Origin: Styela clava
Taxonomy: Eukaryota
Assembly: GCF_964204865.1 (NCBI RefSeq)
Contig: NC_135250.1
Location: 20,770,001-20,834,000 of the forward strand
Direction: 5' to 3'
Length of the DNA stretch: 64,000 nt
The notes beneath the pieces were generated by a model. The model had not been told where the DNA came from. It made no database searches and was given only the letters and a program-made list of their open reading frames with translations. Positions 14,301 through 17,031 of this stretch are shown one piece after another. Position 1 is the first letter of the stretch. Each line of letters begins with the position of its first letter. A program made the position numbers and the translations under genes.

Positions 14301-17031
14301 GTTGGCATATTGAAGTTTGATATTTTAAATTGAAGTTGTATTTTATGCTTATTTATTTCTGATTGGTAGAAAAAGAAAAGTTCATTTCTAAATACTTTTT
14401 CTGAAATTCTTGGTAAGTTTACATTTTTATTCGTTTTACCGTAAGCACACGATGCTCCTTTCCAACCCGAGTCACACATACATTGACTTCCGCCACGGCA
14501 ATCCCCATGCCCGGTGCATCTTATCTTACATAGTCTGAGTAAAATAAAAATTCGAATTGAAATTACATTCCCATGAACCGATTACAAATATCCAACTGAT
14601 GAGAAACAATGCGCGGCTCGTTCGAACTATTTTTGTTTCTTTTAACTGACAATCCACAAAAACTGTGCCACGGCGGAAAATTAAAGCAATTCAATGGATT
14701 TCAACTACAACTATAGTATAAAATATGAAATAATACTGTTCAAAATCTTTCAAAAAGTTTTATAAAATATGTTACTTAAATTATAAAATAAACTTACTGG
14801 TTTAGCCTGTAAAAAAAATCAAAGAGAAATATTGTTAGTAAAATGTTCTGGAAGCAACAAATCAATTAATTCATGTGTGTTCATCGTTTTTATTTGCCAT
14901 AATATACTACAAATTTTAGGAAGAATAAATGAAGAATATAGGAAGAATAAAGATTACCCTCGGTGCGACATTACTATATACTAGGAACTTTACGCTTTCT
15001 GAAATTTTGTTTGTCAAATTAGTTTGAAATGAAAATGGCGAACTATTTCATAAAAGACATAAATGATCTTAGACTATTTTTTTGGTTCACTTTATTGTAA
15101 GTTAGAATTTGAAATTTAACTTAAATAACTATCTACAGCATAGTATGTTTTACATTGAAAATGACTGCAAAAGCAAACTAGAGCTAAAATAAATTAAAAC
15201 AACTGTATCTTCAAATTTATTACATAAAAATAATCATGTAGAATAAATTCTGAAAGTGGTTTTTACTCACGCAAAATTTGAAACACTGAAAGAGTAGAAA
15301 TAATTTATTATTAAGTGATTATTAACAAAGTAGATGCTGTTTAATATTCTGTCTTCTTTTAATATGTAAAATCAGTATAAATACAATTAAGGAGATATGA
15401 AAATATTGCTTTTTCAGATTTGGATAATTCAAACGGCTCACAGTAGATATGTGAAATTCGAGGAAAATTGTGCTGAATACTGTTCTGCGGTTTGGTTCTG
15501 GAATACCGATTCTTAATTTTAACTTTGTTTTATGCTGATGTAAACCAACGTCCGCTGCATCACAACAAAACCTAATTATTGCTGTACTATTATTTTATCA
15601 ATGATGCCTTATGTATATTTAAGAAAAGAGAAAAGACATAAAACATCAATTTGAAATCATATGAAACTGTATTCTCATTTACACAGTCAATTCTAGGATA
15701 CCAAAAAAGTAAAAATATTAAATACTGAAATCTCATAGAAATTAGGTTCCAAAACTCCATCAGACATTTTCAGGCATAACAGACTTTTCAATAATGAATG
15801 ATTTTGTTATGTGAAGTATCAGCCATTATTTTACCATTATTTAGAATATGAAACTTACGCTGTCACACTGTAAAAAATAACAAAAGATAATTTTAGTCAG
15901 TAAAATATTTGAAAGTGAAATTCATTAAATTTATATGTGTTGTAGCTTTTTTATTTGGTTCAATGTCACAAACTTTTTTTCATTTCATGCGAAATTTTGT
16001 AGGTATGACCTCAGTTTACTACAAATTGAAATGAAAGGAAGGTTGATTGATAGATTTTGTATTAATCAGCATAAATGATATCTTCAATTCAAAAATGCTA
16101 TGCTATACATGACTTGACATCTAAAAATTAGCTAAAATACATATTATGTTACTGAAACATGATGAAAATTACTTTCCAGAGTTACATGGCAATTGCAGAC
16201 ATTTTAATTAATATATGTATTTGACTTTTTTTTTCGGTAGTTGTAAAAAGTCCAATTTTATTTCGTTGAAACATGGTTCCAGATTTTGCAGTTCCTCATG
16301 GGAAGACATAAAACCTATAAAATCCAAGTCCGAATGTTAAACAGAAAAATGTGTACTCACGCTTTCTTTGCGCTGAAGAAATAGAACATAAAATGGAAAC
16401 AATTACATATAGGGACACGCCTGTCCAGGAAATCGGACAAAAAGATAAATCACTTAGGATAAGCCATTGGTTTATATTATTCCTCTAAAATCTCAAAAAT
16501 GTTTCATAAAACTTTCCCATCCAGATTTTACTGTTCTTTATGGGAAGACATAAAGCCTATAAAAATCCAAGTCCGAATGTTAAACAGAAAAATATGTACT
16601 CACAGTGTCGCGACGCTGAAGAAATATAGGACATAAAATAGAAACAATTAGGAAATTGAACAGAAGGATACAAACAGAACAGATACAAACAGAAAGATAC
16701 AAAGCCCTACAAATCACAAAAATATTTGCTGAAACTTCTCGTAGTTTTCATTTAATTCCAAGGGGATTGCGTTTGGAGTGAATATATATATATATATATA
16801 TACATAATATTCACCCTTCACTTAGACCGTATTTTCGGATTGGAATTAATTAGATCCATATTGCATGGTTTCGTAGAATTTTTAATGTTCTTACTTCTCT
16901 AATGAGACTGATATTATTAAATAGAATACAATTAAATACAAAATAATATCATCTTACAACCACGCGTCAGACTGATCCACATGCATCGACAAGATGACGA
17001 CGAGCACGGTTAAAATCAATATTGCTTTCAT
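2227..17031 (-). CDS. Secreted multi-EGF protein gene: signal peptide, microexon-encoded helix, 17 EGF modules, Cys-rich module, thyroglobulin type-1 domain, Cys-rich module; final exon downstream of 2227 unresolved
   Basis: Exons read with GT-AG and consistent phase: 16958-17031; microexons 16604-16615, 16361-16372, 15859-15867, 15271-15285, 14798-14806; EGF 14440-14534; cbEGF 13123-13245, 12679-12801, 11773-11895, 11333-11455, 10663-10785, 10202-10324, 9765-9881, 9022-9135, 8547-8663, 8037-8153, 7468-7590; EGF 7165-7260, 5883-5973; cbEGF 5282-5412, 4998-5117, 4028-4150; then 3260-3427, 2475-2651, 2227-2388. Confidence 0.85.
2475..2651 (-). CDS. Thyroglobulin type-1 domain exon
   Basis: PC...[32 protein letters not shown]...C matches the Tg1 consensus (C..G.Y...QC....CWCV...G..I.GT). 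Confidence 0.88.
3260..3427 (-). CDS. Cys-rich module copy 1 (correct frame is absent from the ORF track)
   Basis: Phase-1 reading [56 protein letters not shown]; ttttag acceptor, G|gtgtgg donor. Confidence 0.85.
4028..7260 (-). CDS. Two plain EGF modules followed by three cbEGF modules (exons 7165-7260, 5883-5973, 5282-5412, 4998-5117, 4028-4150)
   Basis: [31 protein letters not shown]; [33 protein letters not shown]; [11 protein letters not shown]...; [11 protein letters not shown]...; [12 protein letters not shown]...; splice phases are consistent. Confidence 0.9.
6248..7044 (-). mobile_element. Non-autonomous hAT (Charlie/Buster-like) element, copy A
   Basis: TIRs cagtggtcgacaaact / agtttgccgacccctc; imperfect 8-bp TSD ccgtatgt/ccacatgt; transposase C-terminal remnant [11 protein letters not shown]; homologous to 60470-61261. 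Confidence 0.85.
7468..13245 (-). CDS. Run of 11 single-exon calcium-binding EGF modules (phase 1-1, 114-123 nt each)
   Basis: Each exon begins D-x-[DN]-E-C and contains C-x-N-x-x-G-x-[FY]-x-C-x-C, e.g. [41 protein letters not shown] and [41 protein letters not shown]. Confidence 0.92.
12035..12057 (-). pseudogene. Truncated cbEGF exon remnant DVNECIL*
   Basis: Same ~280 nt upstream intron and acceptor as 13918-14200, but only the first codons of the exon survive. Confidence 0.7.
13820..13917 (-). pseudogene. Decayed cbEGF exon (or alternative terminal exon) ending in a stop codon
   Basis: ttgcaattag|[32 protein letters not shown]; sixth Cys and donor are missing. Confidence 0.7.
14440..14534 (-). 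CDS. First EGF exon (tenascin-like EGF) [31 protein letters not shown]
   Basis: ttttactcag acceptor, G|gtaaaa donor; six-Cys EGF with CxCxxGWxGxxC. Confidence 0.85.
14798..14806 (-). CDS. Microexon 5 (9 nt, gctaaacca; LNQ)
   Basis: poly-T tract acag|gctaaacca|gtaagttt; phase 2-2; joins the phase-2 acceptor of the first EGF exon. Confidence 0.75.
15271..15285 (-). CDS. Microexon 4 (15 nt, tgtttcaaattttgc; VSNFA)
   Basis: ttctactctttcag|tgtttcaaattttgc|gtgagtaa; phase 2-2. Confidence 0.75.
15859..15867 (-). CDS. Microexon 3 (9 nt, tgtgacagc; VTA)
   Basis: ttattttttacag|tgtgacagc|gtaagttt; phase 2-2. Confidence 0.75.
16361..16372 (-). CDS. Microexon 2 (12 nt, cgcaaagaaagc; AKKA)
   Basis: tatttcttcag|cgcaaagaaagc|gtgagtac; phase 2-2. 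Confidence 0.75.
16604..16615 (-). CDS. Microexon 1 (12 nt, cgtcgcgacact; VATL)
   Basis: tatttcttcag|cgtcgcgacact|gtgagtac; phase 2-2, in frame with the signal exon. Confidence 0.75.
16958..17031 (-). CDS. First coding exon: signal peptide [24 protein letters not shown], phase-2 donor
   Basis: ATG in caaaaatATG context; basic n-region, hydrophobic core and S-x-A cleavage motif; donor TT|gtaaga. Confidence 0.85.

Follow-up and report, generated by a model that had tools for sequence, protein, structure and literature searches.

The locus lies on the minus strand of the 64-kb stretch of DNA that was analysed (the window). It probably holds a single-copy, highly expressed gene for a secreted EGF-repeat protein, whose N-terminus would be assembled from five phase-2 microexons of 12, 12, 9, 15, and 9 nt. 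The exons of this part of the gene are given below in order of transcription.

16958..17031, minus strand: exon 1, 74 nt; ATG and a hydrophobic, signal-peptide-like leader; ends in phase 2 (TT/gtaaga)
16604..16615, minus strand: microexon A, 12 nt, CGTCGCGACACT; V-A-T and the first two letters of Leu
16361..16372, minus strand: microexon B, 12 nt, CGCAAAGAAAGC; A-K-K and the first two letters of Ala
15859..15867, minus strand: microexon C, 9 nt, TGTGACAGC; last 6 letters present in the loose end of an RNA contig
15271..15285, minus strand: microexon D, 15 nt, TGTTTCAAATTTTGC; full spelling in the loose end of an X4 RNA contig (14534); strong splice sites
14798..14806, minus strand: microexon E, 9 nt, GCTAAACCA; full spelling in the X4 loose end; strong splice sites
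14440..14534, minus strand: first ordinary exon, with a six-cysteine EGF domain; RNA joints at 14534 and 14440

Gene model and splicing of the microexons

RNA-like contigs covered 16958–17077 and were joined to position 14534. Exactly 57 extra letters stood between exon 1 and the EGF exon (16958 to 14534) in contigs from the runs X1 (depth ~1350), X3, and X4, which belong to two studies. Among the 161 AG..GT candidates in the interval, strong splice sites were found for A to E only, and the lengths of these five add up to the same number (12+12+9+15+9 = 57). Both 12-mers are therefore needed to account for the 57 letters, and the letter count places A and B together in the mRNA. The RNA support for A and B is this combined length, their own letters not being displayed in the contigs, unlike those of D, E, and part of C. 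The preliminary description had taken the duplicated microexons to be real exons, and the match between the RNA gap and the sum of the only strong candidates bears this out. The contigs of the three runs, which drop rare variants, contained the full 57-letter form only.

All five microexons are of phase 2-2, have lengths that are multiples of 3, and stand behind the signal-peptide-like exon 1. The microexon-coded part of the gene is limited to 57 nt (19 codons), and the rest consists of ordinary EGF exons, 95 and 123 nt long. The exon at 14440..14534 matched the Pfam families EGF_Teneurin (3.6e-8) and EGF_2. Searches of the 377-Mb genome for paralogues, with single exons as queries, revealed no second copy of the leader exon or of the EGF exon, with weak generic EGF matches only. 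Beyond this genome, neither a metagenome scan with a 21-nt word from the flank nor a word-based search for proteins that match the stop-free open frame at the EGF exon gave a match, which has little weight given the length window and the collections searched. Arthropod cuticle and trematode eggshell families gave no match either, but nor did their controls, and these blanks have no bearing on the taxon; the ADI/amidinotransferase family likewise gave no match. The 21-residue microexon peptide had a hydrophobic moment (muH) of 0.289, a value reached or exceeded by 12% of shuffles; an amphipathic helix was rejected as not significant.

Divergence of duplicated microexons and introns

Microexons A and B occupy corresponding positions in a tandem duplicate, the cores of which lie at 16278–16405 and 16520–16650 with a start-to-start spacing of 242–245 bp. 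The preliminary description recognised the duplication and gave its length as ~130 bp. That figure was too short: the true tandem repeat is ~218 and ~237 bp long.

16520..16737, minus strand: tandem unit 1, ~218 bp; distal intron segment, then core 16520–16650 with microexon A
16278..16514, minus strand: tandem unit 2, ~237 bp; distal intron segment, then core 16278–16405 with microexon B

The minus-strand order in each copy is TATTTCTTCAG, 12 nt, GTGAGTACA, with the acceptor TATTTCTTCAG and the donor GTGAGT, so that the splice sites are identical between copies. The upstream edge of the core homology coincides with a branch-point-like TAAT located 33 nt 5′ of the acceptor. The distal part of the unit contains several indels (68 gap columns in the alignment) and, in unit 1, a 14-nt mini-repeat; its homology is significant, with a score of 47.75, above the highest values among shuffles (41.8) and real-intron controls (36.8). 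A genome search found two copies of the duplicated unit and no others, which rules out a transposon or repeat family with a variable core. Coding on the plus strand across the unit was also ruled out (the only short ORF goes out of frame at a 1-nt indel). A third similar exon at 57134–57158 proved to be a chance match with neither a pyrimidine tract nor flank similarity.

The coding letters of the two copies diverged much faster than their introns. CGTCGCGACACT and CGCAAAGAAAGC match at 5/12 positions and differ at 7/12, and the adjacent (proximal) intron on both sides differs at 8/116 positions (Fisher p = 4e-5). A recount thus agreed with the preliminary figure of five matching positions, and its hand count of about 7 differences in 84 intron positions corresponds in the alignment to 6 substitutions and 1 indel in 83–84 nt downstream of the exons. 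Upstream, 2 substitutions and a 2-nt indel were found in 33 nt. A scan statistic for any 12-nt window with at least 7 of the 15 differences gave p = 0.002. The distal intron differs at 7/64 positions (10.9%; ~89% identical where aligned), and the exons exceed this segment as well (p = 8e-4); the distal and proximal intron did not differ significantly from each other (p = 0.25). Hamming and Levenshtein distances between A and B are both 7, which means that no indel shortcut exists between them and that a single indel, named beforehand as a possible source of the difference, does not account for it.

The exon divergence (58%) may be compared with the ~71% expected between unrelated sequences, and the identity of 5/12 is not above random expectation (0.29). 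In the phase-2 frame fixed by exon 1, the copies encode VATL and AKKA, as had been proposed, and all four residues differ. Codon positions 1 and 2 hold 6/7 of the differences and third positions changed in 1/4 cases, an excess that is not significant (p = 0.15). For the three whole codons, nd was 4.0 over 6.67 sites and sd was 1.0 over 2.33 sites, which are too few sites; with four codons (pS ~0.43–0.6, pN ~0.6–0.7) there are likewise too few to separate dN from dS. Transversions make up 4/7 of the changes and the CpG o/e in the window is 1.07; together these rule out CpG decay as a driver of the change.

The same reversal was found in microexons C and E. Their flanks align over ~130 nt at ~78% identity, and the exons match at 2/9 positions (7/9 differing in the exons vs. 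29/129 in the flanks, p = 0.001). C and E are an older duplicate pair than A and B. A 1.35-kb duplicated unit with ordinary exons of the same gene served as an internal control.

12440..13320, minus strand: control unit, upstream copy of the 1.35-kb duplication; calcium-binding EGF exons 13245..13123 and 12801..12679
11100..11975, minus strand: control unit, downstream copy of the 1.35-kb duplication

Here the usual pattern was observed, with the duplicated EGF exons diverged by 6.5% and the introns by 16%. The proximal introns of the control were only slightly less diverged than the distal ones (12.7% vs. 17%). The faster divergence of coding sequence claimed in the preliminary description is thus supported by the exact test and by the second, older microexon pair, and the ordinary EGF exons of the same gene do not show it.

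Possible causes of the exon excess

We consider a recent duplication followed by selection on the peptide as the main reading and give this account as a whole a probability of about 0.5. The two 12-nt exons would have arisen when a unit of ~230 bp (intron, exon, intron) was duplicated in tandem. The intron letters would then have drifted at an ordinary rate (7–11% substitutions), and the branch-point region, polypyrimidine tract, AG acceptor, and GTGAGT donor would have stayed unchanged, while nearly all of the 12 coding letters were replaced. A redundant four-residue turn could have been quickly re-specified in this way by selection on the peptide, which left V-A-T-L, a hydrophobic peptide, in one copy and the cationic A-K-K-A in the other, and every duplication would thus lengthen the cassette by a short peptide module. 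Selection on the peptide, suggested in the preliminary description in the form of diversifying selection, is, we infer, the most likely cause of the exon excess in A and B when weighed against a special mutation process.

An old duplication would reverse the reasoning: the exons drifted to saturation, neutrally or under relaxed constraint, and the introns only look young, either because purifying selection preserves the splicing signals of the microexons or because gene conversion has kept the introns of the two units alike. Microexons of other animals typically have conserved intronic flanks, and the start of the core homology at the TAAT, the identical splice sites, and the indel-rich distal unit would all fit with this. 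Strong constraint on intronic splicing signals had indeed been offered in the preliminary description as one of two causes. As the main cause it fails to explain the contrast between exon and intron, because the intron 100–200 nt away from the exon is also ~89% identical where aligned. Besides, proximal introns in the control duplication are hardly less diverged than distal ones, and conversion tracts would need to end exactly at both exon edges. The flanks showed no stable or covarying RNA structure (fold z-scores from −1.4 to +1.0, no compensatory pairs), and a structured RNA, snoRNA, or miRNA in the conserved flank was rejected on the same grounds; the sole Rfam match, a sub-threshold snoZ122, is located outside this flank. 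Overall, we regard an old duplication as unlikely. It seems very improbable that the tandem copy is an artefact of assembly (for instance, two alleles joined end to end) or that the 12-mers are left out of the mRNA. Polymorphism in the species is high (intronic contigs are 1–4% off the assembly, DNA runs contain only ~75% of the 31-mers, and those of study P3 appear to differ from the assembly by ~1%), and the letters of A and B are not displayed in the contigs. Nevertheless, C, D, and E leave 24 letters of the RNA contigs to be accounted for, and A and B are the sole strong candidates left to supply them; several indels and the mini-repeat separate the two units, unlike collapsed alleles.

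Alternatively, the 12-mer of one copy could have been swapped as a block in a single complex mutation, or in a small number of them, each altering several nucleotides at once. Patch repair from a template, slippage, and 3-nt indels that compensate each other in frame are candidates, and the change would have been tolerated because the peptide is a permissive linker. Such an event would resemble the "accelerated segment switch in exons" (ASSET) documented in snake toxins (PMC7285919). Exon identity at the random level (5/12 in A/B and 2/9 in C/E) despite flanks that are 78–93% identical speaks in its favour, as do the perfect 8-nt palindrome GTCGCGAC in exon A and the tandem AAAG-AAAG in exon B, which are signs of non-point mutation. 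By our own count, 5 events instead of 7 suffice if gaps are allowed (insertion of CGT, deletion of AAA, and 3 substitutions). On the other hand, the window contains no donor template of at least 10 nt for either 12-mer, and local patch replacement was rejected for this reason; the length of 12 was kept in both exons and third codon positions are mostly unaltered. In each of two independent pairs, moreover, the altered block runs from one splice site precisely to the other, and blind mutation would have no regard for these limits. A block switch of this kind therefore appears doubtful, to about the same degree as an old duplication.

Exons normally evolve slower than introns, and faster change in the exon than in the intron is classically taken to indicate adaptive or targeted diversification. 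To our knowledge, this pattern has so far been found mainly in toxin, immune, and parasite-surface genes. At this locus, the reversal occurs at the smallest scale, with whole exons of 9–12 nt rewritten within near-unchanged splice scaffolds twice in one gene, of which the ordinary exons provide a built-in control. The locus is thus a compact test of how duplicated microexons acquire new coding content and of selection versus a special mutation process as the source of the rewriting. In a broader form, the microexons of this gene would be rewritten after every duplication, either by mutation focused on microexons or by recurrent selection for a new module of four to five residues; we find this extension quite unlikely, less probable than either the old duplication or the block switch. 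If it holds, the cassette would let one follow, step by step, how duplicated splice scaffolds give rise to new peptide sequence, in a process where the scaffold (branch point, tract, AG, and GT) is the heritable unit and the coding letters are free. If general, it would represent a distinct mode of exon evolution beyond parasites and venoms.

Comparison with known systems

Neuronal and endocrine microexons that depend on SRRM3/4 are 3–27 nt long and are recognised via nearby intronic signals, and the exons themselves are highly conserved. The microexons of the present gene are similarly short and rely on nearby intronic signals, but they are unconserved between duplicates and the gene encodes a probable secreted EGF protein. 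Microexons of the SRRM3/4 type carry an enhancer with a UGC motif directly upstream of the acceptor; this motif (TGC in the DNA) was absent from the last 20 nt before the acceptor in 5/5 microexons (A to E). Mutually exclusive tandem exons likewise arise by duplication of an exon with its flanks and have equal length and phase (PMC9741552). They differ in that one exon is used per transcript and the copies stay similar, whereas here both copies occur together (57 letters) and the sequences of A and B are not recognisably homologous.

In snake toxins, short exon segments are swapped for unrelated sequence by ASSET (PMC7285919). As in venom toxins (snake PLA2 and three-finger toxins), duplicate coding segments outpace the adjacent intron in both A/B and C/E. 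The venom examples concern paralogous genes of large families, and our case concerns two microexons within one single-copy gene, in which the replaced segment is a whole exon and there is no sign of toxin function.

Schistosome micro-exon genes (MEGs) combine a signal peptide, very short symmetric exons, and a secreted product with reported exon duplication and high dN/dS, and many of their products are predicted to be amphipathic (PMC4350168, PMC5825161). The gene described here shares with them the leader and the symmetric microexons with lengths divisible by 3. Most of the coding sequence of MEGs consists of microexons; the 57 nt found here are more like the composite VAL-6 (PMC4350168). 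MEGs form multi-copy, often clustered families, in contrast to the lack of a paralogue in the 377-Mb genome, and they vary the protein by microexon skipping, while the full-inclusion form alone was present in our contigs, which do not retain rare variants. We consider the schistosome micro-exon genes, together with the accelerated exon evolution in toxin genes, to be the closest parallels.

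Microexons in the 5' part of the gene and their presence in RNA

The 5' part of the gene, read from the sequence on the minus strand, spans 17031..14440. Five phase-2 microexons (A to E) lie between exon 1 and the first EGF exon. All of them are flanked by an AG acceptor behind a pyrimidine-rich tract and by a GTRAGT donor. Calcium-binding EGF exons are located downstream of the first EGF exon.

Exons of the 5' part of the gene
17031..16958, minus strand: exon 1, starting with ATG and a hydrophobic leader, phase 2 at its end
16615..16604, minus strand: microexon A, 12 nt
16372..16361, minus strand: microexon B, 12 nt
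15867..15859, minus strand: microexon C, 9 nt
15285..15271, minus strand: microexon D, 15 nt
14806..14798, minus strand: microexon E, 9 nt
14534..14440, minus strand: 95-nt exon, EGF domain according to Pfam

The in-frame translation of the microexon-coded peptide, from the leader to the first cysteine, was F-VAT-L-AKK-A-VT-A-VSNF-A-LN-Q.

Logan contigs of four RNA-like runs (X1–X4) from two studies were compared with region 12500-17300. The run type "RNA" was assigned by guess; the joints without introns themselves show spliced RNA. Contigs of X1 (depth about 1350) and X3 connected 16958 to 14534 with exactly 57 letters in between, the skipped stretch being bounded by GT..AG on the minus strand. 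An X4 contig carried 63 loose letters at 14534, the first 30 of which read through E and D into six letters of C. When the interval between exon 1 and the EGF exon was scanned exhaustively, 161 AG..GT candidates of 3–30 nt emerged, and a GTRAG[TA] donor together with at least 70% upstream pyrimidines was found in only five of them, A to E. Because the lengths of these sole strong candidates total 57, all five microexons are co-spliced in the dominant transcript; for A and B the support consists of the letter count and exclusion. A and B are therefore not mutually exclusive, and they are real exons, as the preliminary description had held, since the 57 RNA letters need both. Artefact or unspliced 12-mers would be a very improbable source of the pattern described below.

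Contigs of X2 were very deep (about 640–1900) on the downstream EGF exons, and none covered 14432-14592 or 16847-17168 (the first EGF exon and exon 1), which could mean that contigs broke at bubbles caused by variants or isoforms, or that the 5' end differs in this sample. At 17007, an X3 RNA contig has A and the assembly C, a polymorphism in the signal peptide (leader codon 9, Val to Leu on the coding strand). At 14917-14938, in the intron between D and E, contigs of three runs carry 65 other letters in place of 20 reference letters, and close to this site the same contigs depart from the assembly by as much as about 4%, evidence of a polymorphic indel and of a highly heterozygous species.

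Exon and intron divergence in the duplicated units

The cores around A and B (16520-16650 and 16278-16405) were alignable across 131 and 128 nt. The core is not a dispersed repeat, as just two copies are present in the 377-Mb assembly. The tandem duplication proposed earlier is real, but it extends beyond those cores: 16514..16485, directly after core 1, resembles 16737..16707 upstream of it, and the distal stretches 16737..16651 and 16514..16406 aligned with a score of 47.75, compared to maxima of 41.8 in 1000 shuffles and 36.8 in 150 real intron pieces of the same gene. Since homology continues through the distal stretches, the event was a head-to-tail duplication of about 220–240 bp. Indels subsequently built up in the distal part, among them a 14-nt mini-repeat at 16659-16703 in unit 1.

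An AT-rich motif of ~25 nt (TTTTATGAAACATTTTTGAGATTTT and variants) occurs three times on the minus strand: each tandem unit begins with a copy (16710-16733 and 16486-16511), and a third (14741-14767) follows microexon E after about 30 nt (pairwise p = 0.003–0.017). It may act in intronic splicing, or it may be what is left of an ancestor shared by all the units.

Differences between the A and B units
Exons A and B: 7/12 differences
Proximal intron (flanks within cores): 8/116 differences and 3 gap columns; exon against proximal, binomial p = 4e-6
Any 12-nt alignment window with at least 7 of the 15 differences: p = 0.002
Distal intron: 7/64 differences (10.9%); against proximal p = 0.25; exon against distal p = 8e-4

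The claim that the microexons diverged faster than the introns was borne out by an exact test (7/12 vs. 8/116, Fisher p = 4e-5). Exon identity (5/12) was not above the base-composition expectation of 0.29, and no indel or shift lowered the exon distance. Intron identity stays near 90% throughout the duplicated unit, while the 12 coding letters are in effect random; the anomaly sits in the exon.

C and E form an older 9-nt duplicate pair with about 130 nt of flank alignable at about 78% identity. Their exons share 2/9 letters (7/9 exon vs. 29/129 flank differences, p = 0.001). As a control, a 1.35-kb tandem unit with two calcium-binding EGF exons, duplicated in the same gene (11100-11975 and 12440-13320, minus strand), showed 6.5% divergence in exons vs. 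16.0% in introns (p = 8e-5), with nearly flat intron divergence at growing distance from the exons (12.7%, 16.8%, and 17.3%), a pN/pS of about 1.15, and every cysteine retained. From this replicate and the ordinary EGF-exon control, the reversal is therefore specific to microexons and occurred at least twice. For its size (two pairs with 21 coding letters in total), the observation has solid statistics; it is real, has one replicate, and has a control from the gene itself.

The 1.35-kb duplication also accounts for an RNA joint in all four runs at which 13245 goes back to 12679, because the splice runs from exon b of one unit into exon a of the unit that follows. A partial third copy lies at 13830-14085 (minus strand), where 13940-14085 resembles 12079-12222 (87–91%). 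It contains an EGF-like pseudo-exon near 13930-13830, terminated by a stop, passed over by RNA contigs (joint 13245 to 14440), and covered by low-depth contigs only.

Possible causes of the reversal

Selection-driven rewriting of the microexons after a recent duplication is the reading we favour, with a probability of roughly one half. Six of the seven A/B differences fall at codon positions 1 and 2 and all four residues are altered, from hydrophobic V-A-T-L to cationic A-K-K-A, as selection on the peptide predicts. The diversifying selection suggested earlier would account for this pattern, but with four codons only, neither the codon-position bias (p = 0.15) nor dN/dS reaches significance, and the selective reading, though plausible, is unproven. 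The other suggestion, intronic splicing constraint, is weakened by the uniform intron identity and the exon-located anomaly. The same holds for an old duplication whose constrained or homogenised introns only look young, which we regard as unlikely, the distal and proximal intron being similarly diverged. Equally doubtful as the main source is complex mutation by block replacement ("segment switch"). In its favour, the exons of both pairs are no more alike than chance would make them, exon A contains the 8-nt palindrome GTCGCGAC, and exon B carries AAAG twice. Against it, blind mutation is not expected to halt precisely at the splice sites on either side of the exon, and to do so in each of two independent pairs. 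No local template for patch replacement of the 12-mers was found.

The palindrome in microexon A is perfect (chance about 2% in a 12-mer) and may be a trace of hairpin-templated mutation; this exon also has three CpGs amid a region of about 31% G+C. CpG decay was rejected (window CpG o/e 1.07; transversions are 4/7 changes). Coding on the opposite strand and a structured RNA or known RNA family in the flanks were set aside. The C/D-box snoRNA family snoZ122 is weakly matched in the intron that follows microexon B (16151-16238, plus strand; 26.7 bits vs. gathering score 38, E = 0.75), most likely by chance.

Comparison with known systems

A metagenome word scan and a word-based protein search for relatives were blank, which, given their scope, means little. 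Two lineage-marker families (arthropod cuticle and trematode eggshell) likewise gave no match, nor did their controls, which makes this result uninformative. The SRRM3/4 microexon programme is conserved, whereas in the present gene the exon letters have not been kept and no UGC motif lies in the 20 nt ahead of any acceptor. Unlike in mutually exclusive exon pairs, A and B are both included. For snake toxin families, both stronger conservation of introns than of coding exons and "accelerated segment switch in exons" are already established (PMC7285919); the same signature is seen here, but between tandem microexons inside one gene. Schistosome micro-exon genes (MEGs) combine a leader, symmetric tiny exons, secretion, exon duplication, and fast protein evolution (PMC4350168; PMC5825161), and all these features recur here. 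Two defining features of MEGs are lacking, as most coding sequence is in ordinary exons and the gene has no paralogues in the 377-Mb assembly. Alternative microexon skipping was not seen in the Logan contigs of the RNA-like runs, in which rare variants drop out. A MEG-module-like composite was proposed for VAL-6 (PMC4350168). In much the same way, the present gene, which we do not class as a MEG, behaves like an EGF protein to which a MEG module has been attached.
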